Source: Macrostomum lignano (Eukaryota). Taken from it: a DNA stretch of 64,000 nt. The first letter of the stretch is position 1. Each line of letters begins with the position of its first letter. The position numbers and the translations under genes were made by a program. The notes beneath the pieces were generated by a model. The model was not told where the DNA came from. It worked only from the letters and a program-made list of their open reading frames with translations, and ran no database searches. Shown here piece by piece: positions 12,115 to 55,202 of this stretch. The DNA is taken from positions 62,001 through 126,000 of the forward strand of contig NIVC01001091.1 in NCBI GenBank assembly GCA_002269645.1, in the 5' to 3' direction.

Positions 12115-12159
<45 letters not shown>

Positions 12160-15990: not shown

Positions 15991-16032
15991 CAGTCAGTCA
16001 GTCAGTCAGTCAGTCAGTCAGTCAGTCAGTCA

Positions 16033-16083
<51 letters not shown>

Positions 16084-23095: not shown

Positions 23096-25983
23096 TCAAT
23101 CGCAAGGGCAGGTTTTGGCCTCCTCAGCTGCTGGGGCAGCAGCGGAATCTTCAGCAGGCTGCTGGCACCAGCCGCCAGACTTCTGACTGCCACCGGACTG
23201 GCAGGCCTGCGGGGGGGGGAAGATTGTGTAAATGCTGTGAAATTTTTGACGAAACTCTCATAAAACTCTGATTCTGTACTCTGATAACAGCTTTAATATG
23301 TAACCCCCTCAGCTACTGAGCCAACCCCCTCAGCTACTGAGCCAACCCCCTCAGCTACTGAGCCAACTCCCTCAACTACTGAGCCAACTCCCTCAACTAC
23401 TGGGCCAATCCCCTCAGCTACTGAGCCAATCCCCTCAACTACTGAGCCAACCCCCTCAGCTACTGGGCCAACTCCCTCAGCTACTGAGCCAACTCCCTCA
23501 ACTACTGAGCCAACTCCCTCAACTACTGGGCCAATCCCCTCAGCTACTGAGCCAATCCCCTCAACTACTGAGCCAACCCCCTCAGCTACTGAGCCAACCC
23601 CCTCAGCTATTGAGCCAACTCCCTCAACTACTGGGCCAATCCCCTCAGCTACTGAGCCAATCCCCTCAACTACTGAGCCAACCCCCTCAGCTACTGGGCC
23701 AACTCCCTCAGCTACTGAGCCAGCCCCCTCAGCTACTGAGCCAACCCCCTCAGCTACTGAGCCAACCCCCTCAGCTACTGAGCCAGCCCCCTCAGCTACT
23801 GAGCCAACTCCCTCAGCTACTGAGCCAGCCCCCTCAGCTACTGAGCCAACCCCCTCAGCTACTGAGCCAACTCCCTCAACTACTGGGCCAACTCCCTCAA
23901 CTACTGGGCCAACTCCCTCAACTACTGGGCCAACCCCCTCAACTACTGGGCCAACTCCCTCAACTACTGAGCCAACTCCCTCAACTACTGAGCCAACTCC
24001 CTCAACTACTGAGCCAACTCCCTCAACTACTGGGCCAACTCCCTCAACTACTGAGCCAATCCCCTCAGCTATTGAGCCAACTCCCTCAACTACTGAGCCA
24101 ACTCCCTCAACTACTGAGCCAACTCCCTCAACTACTGAGCCAACTCCCTCAACTACTGGGCCAACTCCCTCAACTACTGAGCCAATCCCCTCAGCTATTG
24201 AGCCAACCCCCTCAGCTACTGAGCCAGCCCCCTCAGCTACTGAGCCAATCCCCTCAACTACTGAGCCAACCCCCTCAGACACTGAGCCAACCCCCTCAGA
24301 CACTGAGCCAACCCCCTCAGACACTGAGCCAACTCCCTCAACTACTGAGCCAACTCCCTCAACTACTGGGCCAACTCTCTCAACTACTGAGCCAACCCCC
24401 TCAGTCATTCAGCCCAAGTGGAGAATCCGATTCCAACCAACCCTGCGCTGGCTCGCGGAGTCGCGCCGGCCGCAGTCGGACTTCTTTGCGTTGGTCGGAG
24501 AGCAGGGGGCGGCCTGCTCGGAGGCCTTCTGGTCGGCGTTGGACTGGCAGTTTGCTGGGGCGGTGGCGGCGCACGGCGATTTGCGGCAGCTTTCAGCCGC
24601 TGGTGGCATCTCTGCCTCTGGCTGGGCACGTCGTGCGCACGTGTTGTTCAGGTGGTTGCCAGGCAGACGGTTCGGCAGGTCCCAGGTGCCTTTAAAGTCG
24701 CCCCAGGGCGAGCCCTCCGAGCGTCCGACGCCGGGTAGCAAGTGGCCGAGTTCGTTTGCGATGATCTTAGTGCTGCCGGCCCGGGTGGACGGGTACTGCA
24801 GCGGCGGGAATTGGAACAGCATTGAATTCTGCGATGCTATATTTTGTCCAGGAGTTTCAAAAATGATTAATTTGACATTTGAAAAACTGTAAATCACTTT
24901 TTATCGTTATAGTTTATTTACTCGTGTTTATAGACGTATATATAAAACATACAGGCGTAACGATAACGTTAACAAATGGTAATAATATCATTACTAATAA
25001 ATAGTAACAATAAAAAATAGTAATATTCATTCTTCATAGATAGGTGAATAAATTAGTTGTAAACTATATCAGAAGCAAGAAACTAAATTGAAACACAAAA
25101 GAAATAGGAATAAGCAAGCTTAAAAACTTCTAAAATATGCATGCAAGGTACAATGTGAATGGATATTTTCCAAATATACAATATTTTTTAAATTCAAAAT
25201 ACTGCAGGCACCATCACCTCTTTGAACTGCTTGGGCACAGTGTACTGTTGCAGCCGGCCAGCCCGGAATGCATTGTCGTACTGAAAGTAAAGACAAAAAA
25301 TTGAATTAAAACAAAGCATTGCTGATTAATTCTTTGGCTAGACAACTTTGTAAGAACTGACAAAAATAGGTATGACTCAGAAAAACTCTTAAGTTCTTTT
25401 TTTGATTTACTTTTTTTCACACTATAACCCAAATCCACTCTTACTATATACAATTTCTTACCAAATCATAATTTTTAAAGAATTATTAAATTGCATTAAA
25501 ATCTATAATTTTATTTCATCAATGTGGTCTTCTGATTTTATAAATATATCGAAGGTACTATCGAAAGAAGTTAAAAGATTTGTCAATGAGTATAATCCTA
25601 CTAAAAAATGGGATCGAAAAAGTTTCTGAATTCAATTTGCAATCAGCAGATTCTTCCTTTGAGGGGACTCTGCCTTCTCTACTTCTTAATTTCTGAAAGT
25701 TGCTTATAAGTACGAATAAGCGATAAGTTTATAAAAATTCAGTACGTTCGTGCAATTGCAGTTCTCTTCAGTTTTCATATTTCAGTTTTCCTAGTCTGCT
25801 GTAGTTCAAAACATTATTTTTAAATATCTGAGAACTTTTTGTGGCTAGGGTAGACTTCAAGAAAACGTTTATATACCAAGTGATTTTGAATTAAAGATAT
25901 TATATTTCTAAAAAGTACTGATGACGAAGGGCCTTTTAAGAAGCAAATTAACTTACTTGATTTACAGCAAATCCCGACGACAT
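23096..25983 (-). CDS. CFAP126: Protein Flattop / cilia- and flagella-associated protein 126, about 184 aa; exons 25983-25957, 25280-25218, 24795-24442, 23206-23096
   Basis: Spliced product MSSGFAVNQ|YDNAFRAGRLQQYTVPKQFKE|YPSTRAGSTKIIANELGHLLPGVGRSEGSPWGDFKGTWDLP matches Flattop (MATNYSANQYEKAF...TQIIANDRGHLLPSVPRSKASPWGSFMGTW). All introns are phase 0 GT-AG. The last junction (GTTGGT donor) is less certain. Confidence 0.9.
23303..24403. repeat. 21-bp minisatellite CTACTGAGCCAACTCCCTCAA filling CFAP126 intron 3
   Basis: Seen directly, about 52 copies. Confidence 0.95.
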
Positions 25984-26111: not shown

Positions 26112-26999
26112 AGTAGCATTGGTCAGACCAATCTTAAGAAGCTGCAAAATTGGCTACAGCGATATTTCAAAGAGCGCCTTTTTCAGCGTCCAATGGCAGA
26201 AAAGCGCACGTGTAAATTAAAACCGTTCTGCTTTTCTTTCCAAGTTTAGCCAAGTTTGAGGCGCATTCATGCCCGACGATACCTGAATTTGATTTGGAAA
26301 GTTTTATATGTGGCATGACAAAAGTATACTTTCTTGTATTCATATTTATTTATAACTTTTTGCTTACTAATTGCTACATAAAAACTACCAAAACTCCGCC
26401 AACTCATGTGAGTTTACTATTGATGTCTGTATTCTGTATAGAATAGAATGTCTATTCTATATGATGTGTGTATTCCCTCTCTGTTTTAACAAAGGTACTA
26501 AATTCAAAACTTTAAAGCTTTAAAACTTTAAATTTATTTAAGTTTATGTTTATAATTATAAAGTTATTGTATACGTACATGGACGCTTAGGGATTCGTGA
26601 AGTGAATAAATCGATTTTAATACTTAGCACTTTAAAGGAAAAAGTGCACACATGCAGTAATGCATCAAGCACTTAAAGACGAGGATTTTGAAAAGTGAAC
26701 CGAAGCACGTGCATATGCACGCACAGTAGCGAGAAAAATTTTTCTAGTTCCTCTGGCCCTACAAAAATAATCAAATTGCTTGGAAGCACACATGGATACC
26801 CAGCGCAGTTTAACAAAATTATAAACTTCACTCACAATTCTAGACCATTGCACATAAGTGTAATTCAGGATCTCTAAAAACAAGTCCATGTCACATTTGA
26901 TCGGGAATAAAACTTTACGACAAACATTTTATGGATTTGCTAACATGCTAATTGCAATCTACCAGAGTAGCTTTGCCCCCAAAACACCTCTATTTCAAG

Positions 27000-29900
27000 C
27001 ACCACCCTCCTACCCTTCCACAAAAGCCTCAGCTCAGCGGTTCAGGCGCCGCAGGACCACCAGGCGACGATGAGGACGTTGGAAGCGGCAGCGGATCTGG
27101 TTTCCCTTCGGGTGGCCGCTTGTCCCCCTACTACCACTTCTCCGCCACCTTTTCGTCAGCCACTACCGTCATTCGCCTGCCTCTGTTCCCTGCAAGTACA
27201 GTCGTCCCAGTTTCAGGCGTCACCCAGGCGCCTCGCCTTGTCAGTAAGATCTGCATTTTCTTGCAGTTTTTCTCATTTTCGGCGTCTAGCAAAACGCGTC
27301 AAGGTTTCAATTAGAAAATTTAGAAATCGATTCATTGATAGCAGGACACAACCAATCCTTTTGGGAAATCGTTTCCCGCTGGCATAGAGGCGCGCTTCAA
27401 CTGGCGTCTACTCCCTAGTTGGACTTTTTCCCCGAGATGTTTTCCTCTCTAGAAATGCAATTTCAAGTCTGGGCACGACCTTGGGGGACTGAGACTTCAA
27501 AACCGAGCAACCAGGAATTGCTGCGAGTCTAAGCGAGAAATAAGGAATCATTCTGAGTCACTAAAAATCTCAAAAGGCAGTGGGGAATCACTGAGTCTCG
27601 GAAAGCAGTGGGGTGTCACTGAGAGTCTCAAAAAGCTGTGGGGAGTCACTGAGAGTCTCAAAAAGCAGTGGGGTGTCACTGAGAGTCTCAGAAAGCAGTG
27701 GGGTGTCATTGAGAGTCTCAAAAAGCAGTGGGGTGTCACTGAGAGTCTCAGAAAGCAGTGGGGAGTCACTGAGAGTCTCAGAAGGCAGTGGGGAGTCGCT
27801 GAGAGTCTCAGAAAGCAGTGAGGAGTCACTGAGAGTCTCGAAAAGCAGTGGGGAGTCGCTGAGAGTCTCAGAAAGCAGTGAGGAGTCACTGAGAGTCTCA
27901 GAAAGCAGTGGGGAGTCACTGAGAGTCTCAGAAGGCAGTGGAAAATGTTTAAAAGCCTCAGTGTACACAGGTGAATAATAGATTATCTAATACCCTTTAA
28001 TTCCAGACCCCAATGATCCTAGCCAGTCTCCCGGATGCTCGGAGTCCTGCGCTATGATGAGATTTGGCGTCAGTCTTGGATTCCAGGCCGTCTGGCGCCA
28101 TGACCTGGCGCGCCCGCAGAGCGGCGCTTTTCGAAAAGCGGCCGCGCCGATAGAAACGGCTCTGGAGGCCGCCTTCAAGGCGTATCCGGGCGAGCAGACC
28201 GCTCGAGTTGTCAGCTTCAGGTTTGAGTCGGCCTCTTCATTGTGATCTGAGGGATGGGACTTGGATAGGCCTGCAGACAACGGAGTGACAGAGCTGAGAC
28301 AGTGGAGTGACAGACAGGACAGTAGAAATTACAGGCCGGAAATAAAAGTGAAATTCAAGACAGTGGAGTAAAATGCAATACATCGGAGTGAAATGCAAGA
28401 CATCAGAGTGAAATGCAAGACAGCGGAGTGAAATGCAAGACAGCGGAGTGAAATGCAAGACAGTGGGGTGAAATGCAAGACATCAGAGTGAAATAGAAGA
28501 CATCGGGGTGAAATGCAAGACAGCGGAGTGAAATGCAAGACAGCGGAGTGAAATGCAAGACAGTGGGTGAAATGCAAGACATCAGAGTGAAATAGAAGAC
28601 ATCGGGGTGAAATGCAAGACATCGGGGTGAAATGCAAGACAGCGGAGTGAAATAGAAGACAGTGGAGTGAAATAGAAGACAGCAAAGGGAAATAGAAGAC
28701 ATCGGAGTGAAATGCCCGACATCGGAGTGAAATGCAATACATCGGAGTGAAATGCAAGACAGTGGAGTGAAATAGAAGACAGCGGAGTGAAATGCAAGAC
28801 AGTGGAGTGAAATGCCCGACAGTGGAGTGAAATGCAAGACATCAGAGTGAATTCAAGACAGCAGAGTGAAATGCAAGACAGTGGAGTGAAATGCAAGACA
28901 TCAGAGTGAAATAGAAGACAGCGGAGTGAAATGCAAGACAGCAGAGTGAAATGCAAGACATCAGAGTGAAATGCAAGACATCAGAGTGAAATGCAAGACA
29001 TCAGAGTGAAATGCAAGACATCAGAGTGAAATGCCCGACAGTGGAGTTAAATGCAAGACATCAGAGTGAAATGCAAGACATCAGAGTGAAATGGAAGAAA
29101 TCAGAGTGAAATGGAAGACAGCGGAATGAAATGCAAGACAGCGGAGTGAAATAGAAGACAGCGGAGTGAAATAGAAGACACCGGAGTGAAATAGAAGACA
29201 TCGGAGTGAAATAGAAGACATCGGAGTGATATCACCGATAGAGATTGAACTCGTGACCTTTGCCAAAATCAGAGGACAAACTGAAAGCCATGAAGTGCTT
29301 ATGGACTCAAAGCTACCTATACAAGAAATGCTCAGGCGTGCTTGAACTAGACAAAAATGTAAAATAGGCATCACTTTTAGACTCCAAGCAAAAGAAGGAG
29401 ATGGCTGAATATAAACTAAATGAGTTTCCAATAAATAATGCAGCCAGACACCAGACTGAATATCGCATGATAAAAGAGACTTATTTCGGCACCCCAGTGT
29501 CGGCTGTCGGCTGCACTTTGAAGTTTGAGTTTGAATATTCATTATCTCTATTTTACCTGCTCCAGCCTGTGAAAGTTTCAGTCTTTGTTCCTGTTTACTG
29601 CGGCCTGCAGCAGCAACTGACCGCTTCTTCTCCGCTTGAAGCAAATAAAAAACAGAAACTAGTTTGCAAAACCTTACTTTGAATGAAGAACACGCATTGG
29701 AGTGCCCCGGAACTTCGAACACGGTTTTCTTACCATATTTTTCTGTTTCTGTGTGTCTCCTGTCACAGCTGGATGAGTTTAAAAAAGAGATTTTTTTCTC
29801 TGGCTTTGTCTGCCTTGCAGCCGAACTTGAAGACTGCACAGTCTTCTATCGGTGAATGCAAGGTTTAAATTAGACATGATACATGTAGTAGCGTCCATTT

Positions 29901-31117
29901 TGTATCATTCAGTGTGCTATTTGATATCTTTGGGTGCCATTTTGAAGCATCAGATTTTTTGTCCCCATTCAGATGCCGGTTTGTAGTATGGCTATATTTT
30001 CTATAGCAAAAGGTGTCACTTTTTTGTTCGGTGCCATTTTGTACCAATTCAGGTGCCATTTTGTCTAATTCAGGTGCCATTTTGCCTAATTCAGGTGCCA
30101 TTTTGTCTAATTCAGGTGCCATTTGGCCCATTTCAGGTGCCATTTTGTCTAATTCAGGTGCCATTTTGCCCAATTCAGGTGCCATTTAGCCCAATTCAGG
30201 TGCCATTTAGCCCAATTCAGGTGCCATTTAGCCCAATTCAGGTGCCATTTTGTCTAATTCAGGTGCCATTTAGCCCAATTCAGGTGCCATTTAGCCCAAT
30301 TCAGGTGCCATTTAGCCCAATTCAGATGCCATTTTGCCCAATTCAGGTGCCATTTAGCCCAATTCAGGTGCCATTTTGCCCAATTCAGGTGCCATTTAGC
30401 CCAATTCAGGTGCCATTTTGCCCAATTCAGGTGCCATTTTGCCCAATTCAGGTGCCATTTTGCCCAATTCAGGTGCCATTTTGTTTAATTCAGGTGCCAT
30501 TTTGCCCAATTCAGGTGCCATTTTGCCCAATTCAGGTGCCATTTTGTCCAATTCAGGTGCCATTTTGCCCAATTCAGGTGCCATTTTGCCCAAGCTAGGC
30601 CCCAGCCTGTGCATAATTAAATTATTAACAAATCGGAGGAGTGAACTTTTTGGCTTACTAGTAAAAAACCGATTTAAGCATTACAATCCTCACCTATCAT
30701 TTATTGCATACTTAATCATTTTTTCGACCATTCATTCGCTGCACTCGATGAATTATGGGGGGGGGAGACATCAAAAGTCGATCGGCTAGCGCCAATTTAG
30801 CTTCAGCTGAGCAAGGCGGGGCCGGGGGCTGCGCAGGGAAGGTGCAGAAGAGAGTTTGACTTGCACAGCCAGGTTTCTGCTGTTTCAACTCTGCTGCGGT
30901 GGCTTGACTCTGGTTGCGCTTTCATTACTGGCTGGAAAATTGAATTGGAGACCCGCTCCGCTAGGCACTCATTTAGCCAGAGTGGCGACGGGGAGGCATT
31001 GGGAGAATTCTCCCCCCCCCCCCAGAACCATCAGAGCCTGTGAAAAGTTGCGCCTCCTCTTAGTAACATTACTTTTACAGTAGATAGCTAGATAAATAAA
31101 TAAATAAATAAATAAAC

Positions 31118-31216
<99 letters not shown>

Positions 31217-31321
31217 CAGATAGACAGATAGATAGATAGATAGATAGACAGATAGATAGATAGACAGATAGACAGATGGATAGATAGATAGATAGACAGA
31301 TAGATAGATAGACAGATAGAC

Positions 31322-31368
<47 letters not shown>

Positions 31369-31369
31369 C

Positions 31370-31429
<60 letters not shown>

Positions 31430-34400
31430 GGATAGATAGATAGATAGACAGATAGACAGATGGATAGATAGATAGATAGACAGATAGATAGATGGACAGA
31501 TGAGTGACTTACTCATTACTAGTTTTCTCACAGCCCAACTCCATCAGGTTGGCTGCCATCCTGACAGCTCCCCTTCTCTCTCATTGAGCCCGGCGTCCAG
31601 CGCTTTTCTAACTCAAGATCCAGGAACTCAGCACCAACCTCTGACTTGACTTGAGTAGGCCCTGAGTAAGGGGGGAGGTGAGCACAGCGAGGAGAGCGGA
31701 GTGATGCGTGGCTGGCAGCCTGAGGAAAATGGTCTGAAGTGGCGGCAGACGCCGGCCCGCCATGCCTGCAGTCATTTCTAATTCGCTCGCTCTCCATCTC
31801 CTGCATTTCCCTTTCCTGCTCAGAGCCAGAGAGTGGAGCCTCATCTAGGCTCTCCCAGAATCTCTCGCTGAGACATCACGCCTCATTAGTGTTCGCTGAG
31901 CACTGCCCGCCTTCACTCCTTCTCCTCCTCTCTCGTCCACCTCTCTCAGTTTTCCATTTCCCCAACAAAAATATATATATTTGGCTGTGAGAGAGGTTGG
32001 GGCATCCGGCCTAGAGAGTAGGAATGATGACGCTTCGCAACGTAGCTGCTCAATGATGCTGGCTGCTGTTTGGTTGTTGGGTCATGATTGATATAATCCA
32101 GTGACTTTTATCAGCGTTGGTGAGACCCGGCATAACCATCTTGTTTTTTTGCTTTAATTAGCTGAAACCAGGTCTGGTAGCGATGGACTGAACTGAGGGT
32201 CTGGTAGCGATGGACTCAACTGAGGGTCTGGTAGCGATGGACTCAAATGAGGGTCTGGTAGCGATGGACTCAAATGAGGGTCTAGTGACGATGGACTCAA
32301 CTGAGGATCTGGTAGACATGGACTCAACTGAGGATCTGGTAGCGATGGATTAAACTGAGGATCTGGTAGCGATGGACTAAGCTGAGGGTCTGGTAGCGAT
32401 GGACTGAACTGAGGGTCTGGTAGCGATGGACTCAACTGAGGGTCTGGTAGCGATGGACTCAACTGAGGGTCTGGTAGCGATGGACTCAACTGAGGGTCTG
32501 GTAGCGATTGTCAAAGCTGAGGGTCTGGTAGCGATTGTCAAAGCTGAGGGTCTGGTAGCGATTGTCAAAGCTGAGGGTCTGGTAGCGATTGTCAAAGCTG
32601 AGGGTCTGGTAGCCGTCTAACGCTCAACTCCTAAATCAGAGGATTAACAAATGCTCAATTTACTGTTGCTCAGTCACTCAGTAGGCGCAGCAATTCCGCA
32701 ATTTACAGGAAAGGCTCCATTGTTGCCGAGGCGTTGGTCATCTCGGTGGGCCATCCGAAGGAGCTGGCGACTGACTATCGGGGCTGAAGCAGGCTCTGGA
32801 TGCTCGTCTGCTGGGCGGCAGCTTTGCTGGCATGCGGCTGCTGCCGGCTCACTACAGATTCTGGCGGCTGGGTGAGCACTGCGGCTGGCATTCGTTGCGA
32901 TGACAACTGGAGCCGTTATAATTTTCAATGGCATTCAGTAGTCTGACTTCATTTTACATCATTAATTCCCGACCTTTGCCTCCTTTTGCTCCTCACTCCA
33001 GTCGCTGAATTCTCCACCCCGGTTTCTCAATTCCCCATCTCGGTTTCTGAATTCCCCATCTCGGTTTCTGAATTCCCCATCTTGGTTTCTCAATTTCTTA
33101 CCTCGGTTTCTGAATTCCCCATTTTTGGTTTCTGAATTCCCAATTCGGTTTCTCGATTCCCCACCTCGGTTTATAAATTCCCCACCTCGGTTTCTGAATT
33201 CCCCATCTCGGTTTCTGAATTCCCACCTCGGTTTATAAATTCCTCATCTCGGTTTCTGAATTCCCCATCTTGGTTTCTGAATTTCCCATCTCGGTTTATA
33301 AATTTCCTATCTCGGTTTCTGAATTCCCCATCTCGGTTTATGAATTCCCCATATCGGTTTCTAAATTCCCCATCTCGGTTTCTCAATTCCCCATTTCGGT
33401 TTCTCAATTTCCCACCCCGGTTTCTCAACTCCCCACCCCAGTTATTCAATTCCCCATCTCGGTTACTCAATTCTCTGCAGAGTTGTTGTTTATTAAAGCA
33501 TCACTCCAGCACTGCAATTTTCCTGTTTCCTTTTCACAGAAACAACAGCTGAGGCGCCACCAGCTGCCAGTTCAGCAACGCCTCTACCGTCTGGGAATCG
33601 CATTTTTGTGAGTGAGAATATTCGAGAGAATGCCTAGCTTATTACTCTGAGTAGAGCGTTGTGTTGCAAATTTAAATTTCTAGTGAGAATTAAAAATCGA
33701 GAATAGTCTATCACTTTCCTAAGATTTCTGCTTTATCAAATTGCATCGTACGCTCTAGCAACTGTACCCTCTCCATAGAAACTGTGCCGTCCTCCCTAGC
33801 AACTGTACCCTCTCCATAGGAACTGTACCGTCCTCCCTAGCAACTGTACCGTCTCCATAGAAACTGTGCCGTCCTCCCTAGCAACTGTACCCTCTCCATA
33901 GAAACTGTGCCGTCCTCCCTAGCAACTGTACCGTCTCCATAGCAACTGTACCGTCTCCATAGAAATTGTGCCGTCCTCCCTAGCAACTGTACCCTCTCCA
34001 TAGAAACTGTGCCGTCCTCCCTAGCAACTGTACCCTCTCCATAGAAACTGTGCCGTCCTCCCTAGCAACTGTACCCTCTCCATAGAAACTGTGCCGTCCT
34101 CCCTAGCAACTGTACCGTCTCCATAGCAACTGTACTGTCTCCATAGCAACTGTACCGTCTCCATAGCAACTGTGCCGTCCTCCCTAGCAACTGTACGGTT
34201 TCCATAGAAACTGTATCGTCCTCCATAGCATCTGTACCCCTCTCTGCAAATTTATTGTTTGCCCTAGCAACTGTACCGTCTTTCTTAGAAACTGTACCTC
34301 CAACCTTAGTAACTGTACTCTCTTTGCACGCCACATGTAGACCCTAGCAACACAGAATCAATTTCTGAAAAATATAGTGCATTGAGGCTGAGGAGCAAAT

Positions 34401-35530
34401 TGCACATCCGGTGAGTAGTGCAAGACAGACAGCTGATGATGATGAGGAAGGGTCGCGGACTCTGGGGAATGCGAGAGCCGGCCGGCGGGATGGCGAGTGG
34501 CAGCTGGTGACGGCCCTGCGGCAACAGTGACAGATCAATAACCCGATCTCTCTCGGTCTCTCGGACGGGATAGACGCGATCGAGAAGAGCGAGAGGAGAG
34601 TGAGGGAGAGAAGAGAGAGCTAGGGTGCGGATAGATAAGCTTTAGGGACAAAAATACGCGACGCGGCCAGGTCCCGTGGGCGGCTAGCAGCTGATTTTGC
34701 CAATCAATTTGCCAAATTGCCATTCCGCTCAGATCTCTGATCTCTCTGTGCCTGCCTCTCTCCCTCTCTCTCGCTTCCTTTTTTGAGTCGCGGGATCCCC
34801 AGAGGATTCTCTCTCACGACCCGGGTCTCCAGAGGAGGTGTGGAAAAGACGGTTATTACTGTTGACGCCAGGAATTATTTGTCATGAATATTGTTCAAAA
34901 CTGTATAGATTAGATGATGGGTTACAAATTTATCAACTGGAGCTGTCGTCACTCCTCATATGGGGAATGGGGGGGGTTTTAGTGCCGAAAATCTGACTTA
35001 CATGTAATTTGGCATCCTGGCATATCGTTTTGGTGCCACTGAACCCAACGTTGTACGAGTATAAAGTAACAGCTTAGCACAGATTTGGCATCTCTTAGAC
35101 CTTAGCCATACCAATTTTGTGTCCCTAGCAACCGTCTTGGCGCCTCTAGGAAAATATTTGGCAAACCTTGGCAACCGATTTTGTGACCCTAGAAACCGAT
35201 TTGGTGGCCCTAGCAACCGATTTTGTGGCCCTAGCAACCGATTTGGTGGCCCTACCAACGGATTTAGTGGACCTAGCAACCGCGGTTTGGAGTCCCTAAC
35301 CAAAGAATTAGGCAACCTTAGCAACCAATTTTGTGACCCTAAGCAACCGATTTGGTGCCCCTAGCAACCGATATGGGAACCTTTTAATTGTTTGCTTAGA
35401 GACGCCTTTTTGGCTGGAACAAAAAGACTGTATAGTACGCAATAAAAATCACTTGCATTCTGAGAGACCGAATGAGTCAACGTCCGGAACAGGATGACTC
35501 CAGCCCAAATTGCTTTTGCATCTTTTAATT

Positions 35531-35629
<99 letters not shown>

Positions 35630-38600
35630 CATCGCTGGTTGCTCAATTTGGTCGACTGAAGAAAAACTTACAGTTCAAGTAATTTCCCTGCAGAGTGAGG
35701 CCTGGCTGAATGAGTCACTGGGCTGCTCAAAATGGGAATGGGAACTCACAGAAGACGTGGGAGGATTGGGATATTGGCAATTGGGAAACAGAAGAGGATT
35801 GGGAGAATGTAAATTGGGGAACAGAAGAGGATTGGGAGAATGGGAATTAGGGAACAGAAGAGGATTGGGAGAATGGCAATTACGGGGAACAGAAGAGGAT
35901 TGGGAGAATGGGAATTCGGGAACAGAAGAGGATTGGGAGAATGGGAATTCGGGAACAGAAGAGGATTGGGAGAATGGGAAATGAGGAACTGGCAGAAAGG
36001 AATCGGGAGAATGGGAATTGGGGAACTGGCAGAAGAGGATCGGGAGAATGGGAAATGAGGAACTGGCAGAAGAGGATCGGGAGAATGGGAATTGGGGAAC
36101 TGGAAGAAGAGAATCGGGAAAATTGGAATTGGGGATCTGGAAGAAGACACGGGAAGATCAAGAGAACCAGAAATGGGAAGGAGAAGGAGAGGATTGGTAT
36201 TAAACAAGGGGAAAGCAATTGAGAAAGAAAACAGCGGAGACCAGGTAGATGAAGGTTGGGTTTAGCGAAAGCTTATAAGAAGATATTTTTCAAAGAACTG
36301 AAAGAGAAAGAGAAGAGAAATTGCTTCTAGGGGCAGAGTATCGCAAATCTGAGAGCTCTGGCGCTCATGTCCCGCAGCAGTGCCTTTATCGCTGTGCCTG
36401 TCAGACTGGCTTTAGATGCAGAATTTGGCCCAGCTTCCCGCCGCATCAGCTTATTGCATAATCTTACAGCTGTAGCGGAGCCCGAGTAAGGCCGGGCAAA
36501 TCTGATTACAGTGAAGAATCCTGCAGCTAAAGCTTTGAGGATAAAGAGGAGAATTTCTGAATTAGCAATCATGCTTTTATTTCGATAATCCCCTATAGAG
36601 CTACATGCTAAACCGATCGGAGCTGGGGGGGGGGTTACTTGGCAGATGGGCTTTCAGAGCATGCAGCGCATTTCTCATCTAAATCGACGCCATCGACACC
36701 CAAAATCGACGCAACCGACACCCAAAATCGACGCCACTGACACCCAAAATCGACGCCACTGACACCCAAAATCGACGCCACCGACACCCAAAATCGATGC
36801 CACCGAAATTCAAAATCGACGCAACCGACACCCAAAATCGACGCCACTGACATCCAAAATCGATGCCACCGACACCCAATATCGACGCCACTGACACCCA
36901 AAATCGACGCCATCGACACCCAAAATCGACGCAACCGACACCCAAAATCGACGCCACTGACACCCAAAATCGACGCCACTGACACCCAAAATCGACGCCA
37001 CCGACACCCAAAATCGATGCCACCGAAATCCAAAATCGACGCCACTGACATCCAAAATCGATGCCACCGACACCCAATATCGACGCCACTGACACCCAAA
37101 ATCGACGCCACTGACCCCCAAAATCGACGCCACTGACATCCAAAATCGACGCCACTGACACCCAAAATCGACGCCACCGACACCCAAAATCGACGTCACC
37201 GAAATTCAAAACCGACGCAACCGACACCCAATATCGACGCCACTGACACCCAAAATCGACGCCACTGACACCCAAAATCGACGCCACCGACACCCAAAAT
37301 CGACGCCACCGACACCCAAAATCGATGCCACCGAAATTCAAAATCGACGCAACCGACACCCAAAATCGACGCCACTGACATCTAAAATCGACGCCACCGA
37401 CACCCAAAATCGATGCCACCGAAATTCAAAATCGACGCAACCGACACCCAAAATCGACGCCACTGACATCTAAAATCGACGCCACCGACACCCAAAATCG
37501 ATGCCACCGAAATTCAAAATCGACGCAACCGACACCCAAAATCGACGCCACTGACATCCAAAATCGACGCCACCGACACCCAATATCGACGCCACTGACA
37601 CCCAAAATCGATGCCACTGACACCCAAAATCGACGCCACCGACACCCAAAATCGACACGCCACTGACATAAAAAACCGACGCCACGTACACCCAGAATCG
37701 ACGCCACCGACAACCAATATCGACGCCACTGACACCCAAAATCGATGCCACTGACACCCAAAATCGACGCCACCGACACCCAAAATCGACACGCCACTGA
37801 CATAAAAAACCGACGCCACGTACACCCAGAATCGACGCCACCGACAACCAATATCGACGCCACCGAGCTCCCATAATCGGCGAGACTGACACCTCGAGGG
37901 TGGAGGCACTTCAAGGAAGCTTTAAAAGATCTGCTACAAGCAAGAGGAGTTTTTGTACAGGGATTTTACTGCAGTAAACAGCCCACAATTCGTGTTGGGG
38001 CCGCCAAGCATTGAATTTATCAATTATTACCAGAGCCTGATGGCCTCATTGAGAAGTCACACAGCTCTCAAAATGCGATTTGACAGCTGGCATTTAGAGC
38101 TGAGGGTTCTCACGCATGGTATTAATACCTCTTCTGCTTAAACGGTGTACTCTTACTGTGAGCTAAATAGGACAGCCGAGAGCTGCGATCGTGTTTGGGT
38201 CAATCTATAAATTACTCTCGTCTTTACTAGACTTTTTAAAAACCACTTCCTGCTTTCTATAGTTTGAGCATTTAAACTCGACAAGGGCTGCTTCTCCTGG
38301 TGTGGGGTGGGGATTACACAAGGCCTCACAGTATTGGCTGATGGAGCCTTTAGATCGATTGCAGTGAGTGAGTATATAATAGCACCCCCTGCACGTCTAT
38401 CATAAAAGGCATATTTTTCTCCAGTTCTCAACAAGGTACTCAAACTTGGCACGAAACAATTTTCAACTTCGCAAACTTCTGACTCTGTTTTTAGACCGAA
38501 AATTCTGCAAGGCTGGTCGGTAGGAGACGAGAGGGTGAGAGAAATTTATAAAAATGTCTGCGTGTTTTTCAAACTACGCGCTGTGAAATTGCGCTAGAAT

Positions 38601-41600
38601 TGAGTTCCATCTTACTCGTACATGTACTGCGAAGTAGATCGAGTCCATCATCCCAAATCCAGTCCCATCATCCCCAAACGAGTCCCATTATCCCAAATCA
38701 AGTCACATCATCCCAAATCCAGTCCCATCATCCCAAATCGAGTCCCATTATCCCAAATCGAGTCACATCATCTCAAATCGAGTCCCATCATCCCAAATCC
38801 AGTCCCATCATCCCAAATCGAGTCCCATTATCCCAAATCAAGTCACATCATCTCAAATCGAGTTCCATCATCCCAAATCGAGTCACATCATCTCAAATCG
38901 AGTTCCATCATCCCAAATCGAGTCACATCATCTCAAATCGAGTCACATCATCTCAAATCGAGTCACATCATCCCAAATCGAGTCCCATCATCCCAAATCG
39001 AGTCCCATCATCCCAAATCGAGTCCCATCATCCCAAATCGAGTCCATCATCCCAAATCGAGTCCCATCATCTCAAATCGAGTCCATCATCCCAAATCGAG
39101 TCCCATCATCCAAAATCGAGTCCATCATCCCAAATCGAGTCCCATCATCTCAAATCGAGTCCCATCATCCCAAATCGAGTCCCATCATCCAAAATCGAGT
39201 CCCATCATCCCAAATCGAGTCCATCATCCCAAATCGAGTCCCATCATCCCAAATCGAGTCCCATCATCACAAATCGAGTCCCATCAACCCAAATCGAGTC
39301 CCATCATCCCAAACCGAGTCCCATCATCTCAAATCGAGTCCCATCATCCCAAATCGAGTCACATCATCCCAAATCGAGTCCCATCATCCCAAATCGAGTC
39401 CATCATCCCAAATCGAGTCCATCATCCCAAATCGAGTCCCATCATCCAAAATCGAGTCCCATCATCCAAAATCGAGTCCCATCATCTCAAATCGAGTCCT
39501 ATCATCCCAAATCGAGTCCCATCATCCCAAATCGAGTCCCATCATCCCAAATCCAGTCCCATCATCCCAAATCGAGTCCATCATCCCAAATCGAGTCCCA
39601 TCATCCCAAATCGAGTCCCATCATCCCAAATCGAGTCCCATCATCCCAAATCGAGTCCCATCATCTCAAATCGAGTCCATCATCCCAAATCGAGTCCCAT
39701 CATCCCAAATCGAGTCCCATCATCCCAAATCCAGTCCCATCATCCCAAATCGAGTCCATCATCCCAAATCGAGTCCCATCATCTCAAATCGAGTCCATCA
39801 TCCCAAATCGAGTCCCATCATCCCAAATCGAGTCCCATCATCCAAAATCGAGTCCCATCATCTCAAATCGAGTCCCATCATCTCAAATCGAGTCCATCAT
39901 CTCAAATCGAGTCCCATCATCCCAAATCCAGTCCCATCATCCCAAATCGAGTCCCATCATCCAAAATCGAGTCCATCATCCCAAATCGAGTCCCATTATC
40001 ACAAATCGAGTCCCATCATCTCAAATCGAGTCCATCATCTCAAATCGAGTCCCATCATCCCAAATCCAGTCCCATCATCTCAAATCGAGTCCCATCATCC
40101 CAAACCGAGTCCCATCATCTCAAATCGAGTCCCATCATCCCAAATCAAGTCACATAATCCCAAATCAAGTCACATCATCCCAAATCAAGTCACATCATCC
40201 CAAATCGAGTCACATCATCCCAAATCAAGTCACATCATCCCAAATCGAGTCCCATCATCACAAATCGAGTCCCATCAACCCAAATCGAGTCCCATCATCC
40301 CAAATCGAGTCCCATCATCCAAAATCGAGTCCCATCATCCAAAATCGAGTCACATAATCCCAAATCAAGTCACATCATCCAAAATCGAGTCACATCATCC
40401 CAAATCGAGTCACATCATCCCAAATCAAGTCACATCATCCCAAATCGAGTCCCATCATCACAAATCGAGTCACATCATCCCAAATCAAGTCACATCATCC
40501 CAAATCAAGTCACATCATCCAAAATCGAGTCACATCATCCCAAATCGAGTCACATCATCCCAAATCAAGTCACATCATCCCAAATCAAGTCACATCATCC
40601 CAAATCGAGTCCCATCATCACAAATCGAGTCCCATCATCCCAAACCGAGTCCCATCATCCAAAATCGAGTCCATCATCCCAAATCGAGTCCATCATCCCA
40701 AATCGAGTCCATCATCCCAAATCGAGTCCCATCATCCAAAATCGAGTCCCATCATCTCAAATCGAGTCCATCATCCCAAATCGAGTCCATCATCCCAAAT
40801 CGAGTCCCATCATCCAAAATCGAGTCACATAATCCCAAATCAAGTCACATCATCCAAAATCGAGTCACATCATCCCAAATCGAGTCACATCATCCCAAAT
40901 CAAGTCACATCATCCCAAATCGAGTCCCATCATCACAAATCGAGTCACATCATCCCAAATCAAGTCACATCATCCCAAATCAAGTCACATCATCCAAAAT
41001 CGAGTCACATCATCCCAAATCGAGTCACATCATCCCAAATCAAGTCACATCATCCCAAATCAAGTCACATCATCCCAAATCGAGTCCCATCATCACAAAT
41101 CGAGTCCCATCAACCCAAATCGAGTCACATCATCCCAAATCAAGTCACATCATCCCAAATCGAGTCCCATCATCACAAATCGAGTCCCATCAACCCAAAT
41201 CGAGTCCCATCATCCCAAATCCAGTCCCATCATCTCAAATCGAGTCACATCATACCAAATCGAGTTCCATCATCCCAAATCGAGTCACATCATCTCAAAT
41301 CGAGTCCATCATCTCAAACCGAGTCCCATCATCCCAATAATCGAGTCCCATCATCCCAAATCGAGTCCCATCATCCCAAATCGAGTCCCATCATCCCAAA
41401 TCCAGTCCCATCATCTCAAATCGAGTCACATCATCCCAAATCGAGTTCCATCATCCCAAATCAAGTCACATCATACCAAATCGAGTTCCATCATCCCAAA
41501 TCGAGTCACATCATCTCAAATCGAGTCACATCATCTCAAATCGAGTCCCATCATCCCAAATCCAGTCCCATCATCCCAAATCGAGTCCCATTATCCCAAA

Positions 41601-42186
41601 TCAAGTCACATCATCTCAAATCGAGTCCCATCATCCCAAATCGAGTCTTATCATCTCAAATCGAGTTCCATCATCCCAAATCGAGTCACATCATCTCAAA
41701 TCGAGTCACATAATCTCAAATCGAGTCACATCATCTCAAATCGAGTCCCATTATCCCAAATGTTTTTGTCAAGGCATCCCAAATAAACTCCGATATGATC
41801 CCAAATCCCCTGGCTCCGCAGGCATGACCTTATCTGACCCCGCCGCCGCCGTGGCCGTCGCTGGCACCGCGGCTCCGGCATTCGCGGCCACCTACTCGTC
41901 AGCGGAAACAGTCAGCAGCGGCTTGCCGCTGAACTCCAACAGCAGCGGGCAGCTGCTGGCTTCGCCAGGCCTCCTGGCAGCCGCGGTAGCCGGAGTTGCC
42001 GGGGCCGCCGTGCTGCTGCTGATCCTGGCGCTGTTCTGCGTCCACCGGATTCGCAAAGCCGACGAGGGCTCCTACGCGCTGGGACCGGCGGCTTCGGCCG
42101 GCAAAAGCTGGGGCGGAGGCGCCGCCTCTGCCGCCGTGCTGCACAACGGGTACAGGCGAGCCCCGACCAGGGAATACTATGCGTAG
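27000..42186 (+). CDS. SDC: Syndecan-type transmembrane proteoglycan with SEA-like ectodomain; exons 27000-27243, 28007-28220, 32709-32871, 33540-33607, 36331-36485, 37961-38118, 41822-42186; signal-peptide exon not found
   Basis: First exon [23 protein letters not shown] (acidic Ser-Gly GAG sites). SEA-like [13 protein letters not shown]...VVSFR|KGSIVAEAL. Intron phases 1,2,1,0,2,1 chain to the TM/cytoplasmic exon if one G is added at 32780-32783. The 36.3 kb and 38.0 kb exons are supported by phase and splice sites only. Confidence 0.7.
27555..27940. repeat. 30-bp minisatellite GAGAGTCTCAGAAAGCAGTGGGGAGTCACT
   Basis: Seen directly, intronic. Confidence 0.95.
28333..29229. repeat. 20-bp minisatellite GACAGCGGAGTGAAATGCAA
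   Basis: Seen directly, intronic. Confidence 0.95.
30030..30590. repeat. 21-bp minisatellite AATTCAGGTGCCATTTTGCCC
   Basis: Seen directly. Confidence 0.95.
31082..31500. repeat. (GATA/GACA)n microsatellite
   Basis: Seen directly. Confidence 0.97.
32170..32615. repeat. 27-bp minisatellite GGTCTGGTAGCGATGGACTCAACTGAG, with a GATTGTCAAAGCTGAG variant block at the 3' end
   Basis: Seen directly. Confidence 0.95.
33015..33470. repeat. 21-bp minisatellite CCCATCTCGGTTTCTGAATTC
   Basis: Seen directly. Confidence 0.9.
33757..34310. repeat. 20/21-bp dimeric (41-bp) minisatellite containing RFX X-box-like 14-mers
   Basis: Units CTAGCAACTGTACCCTCTCC and ATAGAAACTGTGCCGTCCTCC seen directly. Confidence 0.9.
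35120..35370. repeat. Degenerate ~21-bp array GATTTGGTGGCCCTAGCAACC
   Basis: Seen directly. Confidence 0.8.
35531..35627. repeat. (CT)n microsatellite
   Basis: Seen directly. Confidence 0.97.
35750..36140. repeat. Purine-rich ~32-bp minisatellite GGGAACAGAAGAGGATTGGGAGAATGGGAATT
   Basis: Seen directly, degenerate. Confidence 0.85.
36680..37870. repeat. 22-bp minisatellite CAAAATCGACGCCACTGACACC
   Basis: Seen directly. Confidence 0.95.
38635..41760. repeat. 19-20-bp minisatellite CATCATCCCAAATCGAGTCC, about 3.1 kb
   Basis: Seen directly; fills the last syndecan intron. Confidence 0.97.
41822..42186 (+). CDS. SDC: Syndecan terminal exon (transmembrane and cytoplasmic domain)
   Basis: [26 protein letters not shown] followed by C1 [18 protein letters not shown] and the C2 PDZ-binding EYYA* (canonical RMKKKDEGSY...EFYA); CAG acceptor at 41819-41821. 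Confidence 0.92.
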
Positions 42187-46864: not shown

Positions 46865-49385
46865 TCACAAATGTCGACTGTTGTAACACCGCACAGCTGC
46901 CAGGAGCCTTTCAGCGAAGAGAGGATGCATGCTCGCCACCTTGTATCTCTCCCAATGCAGGAGGAAGTCCCTGTGCATCGACTCCATGCATTGTTTGTTC
47001 CATGGCCCCAGGCCTGTTTTGTCCTTGGCGCGGCAGAAGTCACCGACGTGGTGGAAAATCGCTGCGTGGATTTTTGGACTGATGGAAATGCCAAGATCGG
47101 CATAACTGGTGCGAAATTCCTGAATCGCCTGCTTGAAATTGGGACGCAGCTCACTCCCAAAGCATGACACCACGACTGAGTTCAACGCTCAAAGGGCGGC
47201 AACAAACGGCAGCGCTGCCATCGGGCACATCGCTTCTAGCAGGTCCACATTGTGCAGCAACTTGCGGCTCGCATTGCCAGTGAAGCTGCCACTGTGATGC
47301 TTGTCACGTTGGACATTGCAAGCTGTAAGCCAAGCTTCGCTCTCGGGCCACACACCATGCAGACCCTTTTACAGCACATGGACTGCACCGGTCAGCAGGT
47401 GCAGCTCCGGGGGAGGGACAATGTGCAACACCGGGACTTCAACTCCAGCGGAAAAGATGCTGGGCTGGACGACGTTATCAAAGTGCTTAGCTAGTTGGCG
47501 TTCACCACCAGCAGCCAGGTAGGCCTGGTATTTCTCACTGAGGCTGCGAAAGGTCCTTGGCTTGCCACTGCTGTCAAGGCTCCCTTTATTGACGTTGCAT
47601 CAGGTGCAGGGATGCAAGCTACTGTGGGCCATCAAGCCGAGCAGGATGTTGGCAAGCTTCAGGTCGCATGCGATGCTGATGTTCACCGACAGAAGCTGCA
47701 GGCGGCAGCTCTCCCAGAGACATTCCAGGTTCCTGTGGTTCTCCTGCGTGTTGGGAGCAATGCCAAGATAACGGCCCGATGCACGCCAGTGTCGAGGAAT
47801 CGGCGATCAGCCCCCTTCTGTTGCTCCTCACCAGCACACACGCACAGGTCAAAAATGGATATTGAGAGCTTCAAGAACCCACCTCCACCATCAATTCCAA
47901 TTCTGACGACTGTGGAAGCAACATCCATCAACGNNNNNNNNNNNNNNNNNNNNNNNNNNNNNNNNNNNNNNNNNNNNNNNNNNNNNNNNNNNNNNNNNNN
48001 NNNNNNNNNNNNNNNNNNNNNNNNNNNNNNNNNNNNNNNNNNNNNNNNNNNNNNNNNNNNNNNNNNNNNNNNNNNNNNNNNNNNNNNNNNNNNNNNNNNN
48101 NNNNNNNNNNNNNNNNNNNNNNNNNNNNNNNNNNNNNNNNNNNNNNNNNNNNNNNNNNNNNNNNNNNNNNNNNNNNNNNNNNNNNNNNNNNNNNNNNNNN
48201 NNNNNNNNNNNNNNNNNNNNNNNNNNNNNNNNNNNNNNNNNNNNNNNNNNNNNNNNNNNNNNNNNNNNNNNNNNNNNNNNNNNNNNNNNNNNNNNNNNNN
48301 NNNNNNNNNNNNNNNNNNNNNNNNNNNNNNNNNNNNNNNNNNNNNNNNNATGGATATTGAGAGCTTCAAGAACCCACCTCCACCATCAATTCCAATTCTG
48401 ACGACTGTGGAAGCAACATCCATCAACCGGCGGTTTGCAATCATGCGGCCCAGGAGCTCGACCACGTCAGTGCAGACAATGGCCCACTGCTCAGCTGGAG
48501 TCTGCCTTCCCCTCTCTTCTCGGATAAACGCCAGCTGCTTCGCTTGGAAAAGGTCATCCAGTTCGTGATCCATCTCCTCAATGTCTGCCGGATGTTGCTC
48601 TGGACAGCTAAGGCGCCAATCAAAGACTGAAGATTTCGAAGTACAACCTCCGTTTTGCGCGAACTGAGGCCCAGCTCACCTTGCAGATGACGTATATTAT
48701 CCGCCATGAAGACCGTTGTTGGCTTCAGAGGTGGCAGATTCACAGCCAGCCTCATTGAGGGTCCAGCGTTGGATGCCAGCACGGTGATGCCCAAGGCTGT
48801 GTCTCCGGAGCCTGAAGTAATAAGTTTCTGCCGCACAATTTTTGTGGTGAGCCACTCTGGGAATTCTAGGGATGCTTCCTGCAACAAGGCATGCGCATTC
48901 TGCAGTCTTGTGGGTCTGTTGCATGTGTGCAGCTTGCCCCTGCCAATAGGACTGATGCAGAAAGAGCAGACCTTGACCATTTCGGGCTTGGGCGTTGTAG
49001 CCTCGTCCGCCGTCAAACTCGGCTGCCCAACAGACCGCTTTGGGACGTTGGCTTCTGGAGGATAGACTCTGCATCTGGTAGTGCTGCAGATCTTACAGTT
49101 GCATCCATCTTGGCCCACTGATCGGGTCACCGGCAGTAACTGCACGTCCCTGAAGTCATACATCGGTGGCACATCAGCCCGTTGGCCCTTCTCCAGCTGC
49201 TGCAGAGCGAATCTGCATGTGCCACAAATTGCCTTGGGAACGCGATTATCGTGCAAATTGTAGAGCCAGCCACTGTGCCGATTGATGATGGCCAGCATCC
49301 AGGGCGTAACGGATCACAACTCTTTTGCCTTCGAAAAGCACAAAATGCAGATCCAATTGGGGCAACCTTTGTGTGACAGTGGCAT
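46865..49385 (-). pseudogene. Disrupted Chapaev transposase
   Basis: N-terminal Cys/His region (HKGCPNWICILC...PKAICGTC...CNCKIC...CSFC...GKLHTC), VRIGIDGGGGFLK, DTGVHRAVIL, KLANILLGLMAHSSLHPC, SPKIHA, ESMHRDF, YNSRHL*. Stop at 49314-49316, frameshifts near 48580 and 47750, and an N gap. Confidence 0.85.
47934..48349. other. Assembly gap (416 N) flanked by an exact 78-bp duplication
   Basis: 47855-47932 is identical to 48350-48427. Confidence 0.97.
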
Positions 49386-50934
49386 GACAAAAACTGTGTA
49401 CACGCAAGCACAATCGTTGCAACTAAATTTTTAAATGAAACACTTTTAGACAGAGTTGAACAACAAAACCTCTTCAAAAGGGACCTCCTTATGTTTGAGG
49501 TTTGACGTTTATATTGATGAAAAACATAAATGAGCACAATGGCATTACAAGACTGAGGGTGGTTCGGCAAGTGCTTGGTGCAAAGAGCGCACACCAATGT
49601 ACAATATCATACTTTGTATGTACAGCTCAGGAAGAGAGAGAGCAAGCCACAGTGTACAAGTGCTTACCTATGTATGTAGAATGGTGGAGGGATTGGCTGA
49701 GGGTAAAGCTTTGGGTCTGGGCGGGCTGGGTGGATCTGAACTAGTGACTCATCTGAACAAAGTGAGTACGAGTATAAAGGCTCATTCACAACGCCATCAA
49801 ACAAGCAACCAACTCACATGACTTACGTACAAAAGGATAAAAAACTATGCACATGTGTGATCACTTGAAATTTGGTCTCGTTTGAAAGCGGTATGAATAG
49901 GCCTTAAGACTCTCTTGTGGTAGGCCCATCCAAGTCAAATGTGTAGCTTTTAGGCATCAACCAATCATTGATGAATATCAGTAACATGTTTTTTAATGCT
50001 TGCCTTTAATCCTGAACTCAATCGAATTGATTTCTAAACAGTACGGTGATACTTTGCTTTTTTATTAATTCGTCTATGGTAAAAACTGAAAATAGCACTT
50101 TTTGAGCTAAAACAAACAAATACAATTTTTATTTTTTCTTCTAAGGAATCCTTACTAATTCAAGTATCAATTGTGACAAATAACTTTTCCAGTGAATTTT
50201 TTTAGCAATTTTCCAACTATGGTAGCACCGTGCCGTCCATTAAAACTATAAGACTAACATTGAATGAAACTGAAACTTGTAAAATAGAACATAAAATGGG
50301 ACATTTATGGAAGTGAAAATAAAGCAAAATCTGCATGACAGTAAACGCTCTGCCAATGTTCAGCAAATAATTATGAGCTTTTAAGTACTTGTAACTAACT
50401 GTCGTCAGTTGCCAAATGTACTTAGGCAAGCCTTGTGTGCAACTCCTCGACATAAGCAAGCGCCTCTGTCAGTGTTGCCACTCTTGGCGTTTTTTAACAC
50501 TGGCGTTTTTTGGCGTTTTGTGTTTTTATTTGCTGAATTCCTTTTTCCTACATTTTTTCAATGAATAATTCTGACCGTAAAAAGAGAAGTTCAGCTAGCG
50601 ATTGAGAGGTTGCGCAAGGCGCAAGGGAAAGACCAGGACATTGCCATGCGCCTGACACAATTTGCATAGGATTGGCTGGTAATCAAACAGCATGCCATGG
50701 ACAATGTCATCCAACGCAAAGCCGAGGAAGCTGCCAGATTGAAAGGACAGGCGGAGCATGCTTCGCTTGTTCGTCTCCCGAATGTTCCGAAAAAGAAAAA
50801 AAAATTGACTACTCACTACGCTCATACTATGACTGCTACGCTATTGAACATCAAAAAGGAGTTGTCATTCCAATTGTTATTCAGTCTCTTTACTGGTTAA
50901 TTATCACTTTGGTATTTCTAGGTGAGGTTGGTCT

Positions 50935-54816: not shown

Positions 54817-55202
54817 CTCTGGGCGCCGCCTATGGCACAGCCAAGTCTGGCACTGGCATCGCTAACATGGCGGTGCTGCGACCCGAGCTCATCATGAAGT
54901 CCGTGGTGCCAGTTGTCATGGCCGGTATCATCGCCATCTATGGCTTAGTAGTTGCTGTGCTCATCTCACAGAACATGACGCCTGATTACACCGTTGAGAA
55001 GTCGCTCCGTCACCTCGGCGCCGGCCTGGCCGTCGGCCTCAGTGGTTTGGCCTCCGGCTACGCCATCGGCATTGTTGGCGATGCCGGGGTTCGCGGCACC
55101 GCCCAGCAGCCGCGCCTGTTCGTCGGCATGATCCTCATCCTGATCTTTGCCGAGGTGCTGGGCCTGTACGGCTTCATTGTGGCTCTCATTCTGTCCGTTT
55201 AA
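54817..55202 (+). CDS. ATP6V0C: V-ATPase 16-kDa proteolipid subunit c, exon 2 (total 152 aa)
   Basis: [12 protein letters not shown]...[19 protein letters not shown]...[23 protein letters not shown] with the catalytic Glu intact; CAG acceptor at 54814-54816. Confidence 0.97.

Follow-up and report, generated by a model that had tools for sequence, protein, structure and literature searches.

The 64,000-nucleotide stretch of the Macrostomum lignano genome analysed here (the window; contig NIVC01001091.1, positions 62,001 to 126,000, renumbered from its first letter) raises the question of whether a syndecan may carry a folded, self-cleaving SEA domain in its ectodomain. An original prediction, made from the sequence alone, had proposed such a protein for positions 27000 to 42186. 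We conclude, with a probability of about 0.75, that the gene in question encodes a flatworm syndecan with a cluster of glycosaminoglycan (GAG) attachment sites, a folded SEA domain with an FRxG-S[IV]V-type motif, a transmembrane (TM) helix and a syndecan tail; self-cleavage of its product at this motif is predicted.

Exon structure and syndecan identity of the gene

Direct reading of the sequence revealed, on the plus strand, a syndecan gene of four exons, whose splice signals are standard and whose phases match. The region is eukaryotic in character, with short GC-rich exons (62-70% GC) and introns crammed with minisatellite arrays. The GAG-attachment exon (27000-27195) lies between an acceptor ending in ttcaag and the donor CAA/gtacag, and is left in phase 1, which fits the exon at 28007. 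As had been proposed for this first visible exon, it contains a Ser-Gly cluster and an acidic patch (at about 27036-27113). Ser-Gly sites thus stand beside acidic residues in the distal ectodomain, and they are predicted to be glycanated. In a tblastn search, the exon aligned with the GSGSGSG..DDEDLG region of a paralogous M. lignano protein, P0003, described below.

The two middle exons encode the SEA-type module. The first of them (28007-28220) corresponds to the N-terminal half (beta1-alpha1-beta2) and is 39% identical to residues 220-278 of P0003. A minisatellite array adjoins its acceptor, and it cannot be extended upstream, the frame being closed by a TAA at 27988. It ends with TARVVSF plus the AG of an Arg codon and is left in phase 2. 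The second (32709-32871), which encodes the C-terminal half and is left in phase 1, starts with the G of that codon followed by AAAGGCTCC. The two exons are therefore joined within an Arg codon split AG/G, just before K-G-S-I-V, to read VVSFR/KGSIV, with a putative scissile Gly-Ser at 32713-32718. The motif of the cleavable SEA subclass, FRKG-SIVAE, is encoded at 32710-32727, so that the predicted joining of these exons into an FRxGSV/I motif was confirmed.

The last exon (41822-42186), entered in phase 1, encodes a linker rich in Ala and Ser, the TM helix (about 41968-42042), the cytoplasmic C1 segment (42043-42075), a long V region and the C2 segment EYYA (42172-42183), and ends with REYYA and a stop codon. 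It scored 40.0 bits with the Pfam Syndecan profile (PF01034; cut-off 25.2), which bore out the syndecan tail that had been read at this position. The conserved TM segment and the C1 motif, of the R-[MI]-[KR]-K-x-D-E-G-S-Y type, are both present. The C-terminus EYYA is a conservative Phe-to-Tyr variant of the PDZ-binding C2 sequence EFYA; it is also found in protein P0004 of Dimorphilus and at the end of Ciona syndecan (supplementary alignment of PMC10381214). Judged by its sequence, this is a true syndecan TM/cytoplasmic exon.

We used the last exon as a query for a HMMER scan of 1.84 billion representative proteins. The scan gave 76 matches, and the Pfam Syndecan profile was matched by 79 of the 80 members scanned (the 76 HMMER matches and 4 cluster members). 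The best match, P0001, and its cluster-mate P0077 (UniRef A0A1I8FZ97) are both named 'Syndecan domain-containing protein' of Macrostomum lignano in UniRef. Once one base was restored, exon 32709 together with the last exon matched P0077 at 100% identity and P0001 at 99%, the latter differing at two residues. This identity confirms that the window is from M. lignano and places the C-terminal half of the SEA module and the syndecan tail in one gene model. In both proteins exon 32709 (phase 1 out) is joined directly to exon 41822 (phase 1 in), RFWRLG being followed by MTLSDP.

This direct join also answers the idea that the TM exon of the syndecan is part of one gene and the SEA exons part of its neighbour. 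A 9-kb, repeat-filled intron does separate them, and exons 27000 and 28007 are without direct transcript evidence. Against this, P0003 and independent trematode and cestode models hold the GAG, thyroglobulin type-1 (TY), SEA-like, TM and tail parts in a single protein. Among these models are P0006 and P0087; the Logan contig that encodes each of them is only about 2 kb long, and their coding sequence must therefore be essentially intron-free. With P0077 and P0001 joining the C-terminal SEA half to the TM exon, we find two separate genes hardly credible.

Two further segments within that intron, 36331-36485 and 37961-38118 (both plus strand), had been proposed as possibly adding a second folded unit, and we rejected both as exons of the syndecan gene. 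The first needs to be entered in phase 0, while the SEA exon is left in phase 1, and the second failed the same tests. Neither segment is present in P0077 or P0001, and neither had a Pfam match or a counterpart in the paralogous locus or elsewhere in the window. Their GC content was 55% and 46% (intron level), respectively, compared with 62-70% in the four real exons. Both are unique open islands, each lying between two minisatellite arrays. They might still be alternatively spliced exons that place a folded unit between SEA and TM: their splice signals are reasonable (ttctag/G, GA/gtaagg, tgtacag/G and ATG/gtatta), and their phases fit each other and the last exon. Such exons would, however, be out of phase with the frame that encodes the C-terminal SEA half, they have no database homologue, and this 9-kb intron commonly shows open stretches of 50-60 codons. 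We consider this alternative very unlikely.

The reading of exon 32709 as SEA holds across its whole length only if one base is restored at 32780-32784. Three-frame translation showed that the frame breaks by one base at 32780-32787 (GGGG^C) and then meets an in-frame TGA (32785-32787). The original prediction had passed over this point with an ellipsis. The frame giving KGSIV...ATDYRG runs into this TGA and the remainder of the SEA-like text is in the next frame. The switch is confined to CGGGG^CTG at 32779-32786, where one base is missing compared with P0077 and P0001, both of which read DYRGLKQ across the break point. An indel in the assembly or a defect confined to this copy is the most likely cause, since the public protein P0077, otherwise identical, is read through at this point. 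Three other ways round the frame change were also weighed: a mini-intron of 44 nt at 32746-32789, splicing of a short exon, 32709-32745, to 36331, and use of another acceptor, at 36356. None could be upheld, because P0077 and P0001 read straight through DYRGLKQ and join the TM exon.

The assembly contains a run of N at about 47.9-48.3 kb, with the same sequence, encoding MDIESFKNPPPPSIPILTTVEATSIN, on both flanks of the gap. This repeat is a scaffolding artefact or a collapsed duplicate, and it bears on the trust that can be placed in the single-base accuracy of the assembly.

A weak candidate for the first coding exon, MTKVYFLVFIFIYNFLLTNCYIKTTKTPPTH, which resembles a signal peptide, is found at 26315-26407 (plus strand). 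Its donor (CAT/gtgagt, phase 0) fits the acceptor at 27000. It is the sole ATG-started hydrophobic open reading frame (ORF) between exon 27000 and a minus-strand gene located upstream. Its GC content is just 27% and it shows no similarity to exon 1 of the paralogue. The upstream gene (24409-24897, minus strand) encodes the ciliary protein CFAP126/Flattop (Pfam PF22611, 77.9 bits) and is arranged head-to-head with the syndecan gene, and its position limits where the first syndecan exon can sit. The product is about 312 residues long from exon 27000 onward, or about 343 residues with the candidate first exon, and not the roughly 455 residues of the original prediction.

Minisatellites are unusually dense in the window, with units of 20-41 nt and up to 157 copies (38638-41761). 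Besides the syndecan introns (27555-41761), they are found at 62-2400, 8100-9280, 11300-13100, 15900-17000, 23300-24700 and 59500-60100. The arrays fill most of the intron and intergenic space and yield many long spurious ORFs in all frames.

The SEA-type module and its putative cleavage site

When the translations of the two middle exons were compared with the Pfam SEA profile (PF01390), a significant match (E 1.3e-4, 22.5 bits) was obtained, with exon 28007 covering profile positions 14-72. The paralogue P0003 gave a similar result (E 4.1e-5, 24.1 bits), covering positions 11-103 of 106. In a phmmer search of Protein Data Bank (PDB) sequences, the sole meaningful match was the SEA domain of ADGRF1/GPR110, in which FRNGSIVA aligned to FRKGSIVA. 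This domain comprises residues about 148-256 of the receptor (PMC7060178). A profile of all flatworm SEA-like regions found no SEA match among PDB sequences, being dominated by the divergent sequences of parasites.

An AlphaFold (AF2) model was made of the P0003 domain, with an 11-row alignment that included the translations of the window exons. The model (pLDDT 82.8, pTM 0.75) had the order beta-alpha-beta-beta-alpha-beta, and R-G-S-I(L) was found in the beta2-beta3 loop, between strands 56-65 and 70-79. When it was compared with the PDB using Foldseek, ranks 1-5 comprised SEA5 of MUC16, the SEA domain of TMPRSS6 (TMq 0.67) and another SEA domain of MUC16; the SEA domain of a mouse transmembrane protease (2e7v) was found at rank 10 (rmsd 3.0). 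A SEA fold, as had been proposed, was thus obtained on the domain of the paralogue. Together, the profile, the PDB sequence match and the model led us to accept SEA as the best description of this module of roughly 110 residues, even though the Pfam gathering score was not reached.

The SEA-bearing syndecans of echinoderms are among the closest known cases. A skeletal protein of the brittle star Ophiocoma wendtii (contig 358) with 'Syndecan/SEA' domains was described as novel in 2015 (PMC4336488), and a 2023 review reported SEA in the middle part of syndecans from several echinoderms, i.e. the holothurians Eupentacta fraudatrix and Apostichopus japonicus, the sea stars Patiria miniata and Asterias rubens, and the crinoid Anneissia japonica (PMC10381214). 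These proteins share with the window's protein, in this order, a Ser-Gly/acidic GAG region, one SEA domain placed centrally within the ectodomain, TM and a C1...C2 tail; the signal peptide that precedes them in the echinoderms has a weak candidate counterpart in the window. They also have G-S[IVL] at the position of FRKG-SIVAE, as seen in the supplementary alignment of the same review: FYEG-SIIAK (crinoid), ITSG-SLVVK (sea star) and FSPG-SVKVD (holothurian). Alignment of the window SEA with the echinoderm syndecan SEA by hhalign gave a probability of 93.8% (E 1.7e-7, 96 columns). With hmmsearch, the echinoderm profile scored 17.8 bits on the window SEA, compared with at most 0.8 bits for 400 shuffled sequences; in the two directions the scores were 17.8 and 17.6 bits, with shuffled sequences at 5.2 bits or less. 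The window's protein differs from these by coming from a platyhelminth, i.e. a spiralian, by an identity of about 21% in the SEA domain, by a tail ending in EYYA rather than EFYA, and by a longer, Ala/Gly-rich V region.

Cleavable SEA domains of the MUC1 type cut themselves through an N-to-O acyl shift during folding. Like the window's module, those of MUC1-type mucins and of ADGRF1/ADGRF5 belong to the SEA fold class, have G-S[VI][VI] at the tip of the hairpin and sit just outside the membrane on a heavily glycosylated type I protein. They differ in their carrier, a mucin or a seven-transmembrane receptor instead of a protein with a syndecan tail, and for the window's protein cleavage is predicted from the motif. 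In our favoured reading, this gene of the free-living flatworm has the usual five-exon layout of syndecan genes (a signal peptide, here uncertain, then GAG sites, spacer, membrane-proximal part, TM and tail), with the two middle exons together encoding a SEA domain in place of the disordered spacer. The product would be a type I membrane proteoglycan whose Ser-Gly/acidic cluster should carry heparan or chondroitin sulfate chains, followed by the folded SEA domain, a short linker, the TM helix and the cytoplasmic tail. FRKG-SIVAE is kept at the beta2-beta3 hairpin, where MUC1-type domains cut themselves during folding. Most likely, cleavage between Gly and Ser in the endoplasmic reticulum would generate a GAG-bearing outer piece and a membrane-anchored piece, which would stay together non-covalently. 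Force or denaturation could then release the sugar-bearing ectodomain with no need for a sheddase, and the module may likewise have a mechanosensing role.

The syndecans of parasitic flatworms (Schistosoma mekongi, Fasciola, Paragonimus and Taenia) bear on this proposal from the other side. They have a syndecan tail and, after a TY domain, a homologous module with a conserved hydrophobic-S-x-G-H strand, in which Pfam SEA detected no SEA domain. The module of the Taenia (cestode) type was modelled as beta-alpha-beta-beta-alpha-beta with a pLDDT of 80.7. The fold search with this cestode model was less specific, with the extracellular region of zebrafish Gpr126 first and SEA domains of MUC16 lower.

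The main alternative, which we consider less likely, is that the SEA domain is real and does not cleave, and that it serves as a stiff spacer beside the GAG sites and tunes the addition or presentation of glycosaminoglycans. In perlecan domain I and in agrin, SEA modules follow GAG sites and a role in glycosaminoglycan addition or presentation has been proposed; a Ser-Gly cluster followed by SEA, as in the window, would match the layout of perlecan domain I. The parasitic flatworm orthologues retain the module and its modelled fold in the absence of the G-S loop, and a function conserved across flatworms can therefore not depend on cleavage. On the other hand, both M. lignano genes keep FR[KR]G-SI[VL]AE, and G-S[IVL][IVK]V is retained at the corresponding position of the echinoderm syndecans. 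Moreover, in the closest solved sequence relative, the SEA domain of ADGRF1, PDB chain 8hc0_B ends exactly with FRNG, and we infer that it looks like a cleaved fragment.

Several observations weigh against a self-cleaving SEA syndecan, which we nevertheless favour. Self-cleavage is absent from many SEA domains with comparable loops. The Pfam scores of the window and of the paralogue (22.5 and 24.1 bits) are below the gathering score of 26.4, the fold was modelled on a domain of the paralogue that is roughly 45% identical to the window's SEA, and in Foldseek generic ferredoxin-like folds followed the SEA matches with similar E-values. The parasitic flatworm modules differ by having no G-S motif and by a 20-40-residue insert in the beta2-beta3 hairpin. 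As to the gene itself, the ORF as assembled is interrupted at 32785, exons 27000 and 28007 are tied to the rest by order, phase and homology to P0003 alone, and the signal-peptide exon is uncertain.

A second M. lignano syndecan gene and the neighbourhood of both loci

The paralogue P0003 (PAA65095.1, BOX15_Mlig001759g1) is named 'Thyroglobulin type-1 domain-containing protein' in UniRef. The window model (exons 27000, 28007, 32709 and 41822) aligned to the full-length protein with an E-value of 2e-39, from SEA through the tail, a match that chance does not explain. The two share 39% identity from SEA to the C-terminus, the same exon order, an intron of phase 2 within the Arg codon that precedes xGS (RGSIL in the paralogue) and the same C1 tail motif. 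Among relatives, the module is found in P0003 and, in altered form, in the parasitic flatworm syndecans. The paralogous locus (L001, on NIVC01001685.1) comprises exons for the signal peptide, the GAG sites, TY plus the N-terminal SEA half, the C-terminal SEA half and TM/tail. It differs from the window's gene in that the exon for the N-terminal SEA half also contains a TY module, in that the protein ends with EFYA, and in that the gene spans 89 kb and appears to carry an extra 9-residue micro-exon before the TM exon. No TY module was found in the window: residues 120-220 of P0003 gave no match in tblastn, and when all six frames of the whole window were searched with a TY profile derived from flatworm syndecans, nothing was found, the best E-value being 0.23 for a place outside the gene. 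M. lignano consequently has at least two divergent syndecan genes (26315-42186 in the window and 10001-99198 in L001), which are 39% identical and one of which carries TY. According to a 2021 review, bilaterian invertebrates express a single syndecan core protein.

The public models of the window's gene are 3' fragments only. A homologue search with P0003 as query did not return a full-length product of this gene, and searches with the spliced window model, whole or masked for low complexity, gave no matches, word candidates having probably been swamped. Look-up of the encoding contigs gave no record for two window ORFs.

These observations raise the question of whether the window contains a decaying duplicate, i.e. 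a pseudogene, of the intact gene Mlig001759 in a recently duplicated genome. The frame break with its TGA at 32785, the lack of a TY coding part, which the paralogue and other flatworm syndecans have, the lack of a convincing first exon and the fragmentary public models would all fit such a decay. We think it unlikely, because the identical P0077 is read through without a break, and P0001, at 99% identity, is likewise intact. The four exons have kept a GC content of 62-70%, good splice sites, the SEA core residues and a full C1/C2 tail. In addition, an identity of 39% to the paralogue speaks for a duplicate that is old and has been maintained, and not for a copy that died recently.

Downstream of the syndecan gene, an exon of the proteolipid subunit c of the V-ATPase is found at 54780-55202 (plus strand; PF00137, 119 bits). 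An ATP-synt_C gene also adjoins the paralogous syndecan in L001 (2-385), but upstream of it. ATP-synt_C neighbours at both loci suggest an old duplicated block that was later rearranged.

Other features of the window were as follows. A single-exon ORF of 416 residues (18111-19361, plus strand) matched, above the cut-off and with 34.6 bits, the sugar-binding region of DXD glycosyltransferases (PF04488); it also resembles the glycosyltransferase fold family PF12919, weakly and below the threshold, and its product has no identical counterpart on record. At 10713-14218 (plus strand), GC-rich, exon-like ORFs with a P-loop, VVGAPRVGKTSL, and a C-terminal segment, STALHHQVDELL, suggest by eye an RGK-type (Rad/Gem) small GTPase, the separate pieces having no Pfam match. 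The ORF at 60184-60720 (minus strand), which gave a sub-threshold match to the Yip1 domain (23.8 bits; cut-off 28.6), is probably an exon of a YIPF-family gene. Long ORFs with no Pfam match were found on the minus strand at 9804-10211 and 48441-53606. The former looks by eye like a C-terminal portion of a mariner/Tc1-type transposase; the latter may be derived from transposons, both assignments being unconfirmed.

Syndecan ectodomains with a folded domain

Canonical syndecans of vertebrates, Drosophila and C. elegans have the same TM and C1/C2 segments, N-terminal Ser-Gly sites and five-exon logic as the window's gene. Their ectodomains are described as devoid of folded domains, whereas the window's has SEA. 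Reviews present the shedding of syndecan ectodomains as the work of external proteases, and SEA is nowhere mentioned in a 2021 review of the family. An oyster syndecan with two TY repeats is included in the supplementary alignment of PMC10381214.

The architecture had been put forward as possibly uncatalogued. This stood only in part, since it is already known in echinoderms (PMC4336488, PMC10381214) and the paralogue was in GenBank as PAA65095.1. The flatworm, and more broadly spiralian, case appears to be unreported: a literature search on syndecan in Macrostomum, or with thyroglobulin or flatworm terms, gave nothing relevant and no report of a SEA module in the syndecans of flatworms or other spiralians.

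We tentatively suggest, as an idea more likely to be wrong than right, that a SEA domain with a G-S site, possibly together with TY, may have been present in the ancestral bilaterian syndecan. It would have been kept in echinoderms and in the early-branching Macrostomum, would have degenerated in parasitic flatworms, and would have been lost in vertebrates, insects, nematodes and sea urchins. If this were true, autoproteolytic, force-sensitive release of the ectodomain would predate the sheddase-dependent shedding of vertebrates.

The advance is incremental and does not consist in a new kind of molecule. Two phyla far apart, the echinoderms (published) and the flatworms (this work), are now found to have syndecans that carry SEA with a motif of the self-cleavage type, and Schistosoma, Fasciola and Taenia retain the module in a modified form. 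M. lignano is a transgenic model amenable to RNA interference, and the idea is therefore testable in this organism. The distribution of the module suggests that syndecans may have an older, autonomous mode of release, or of mechanical uncoupling, of their heparan-sulfate-bearing part.

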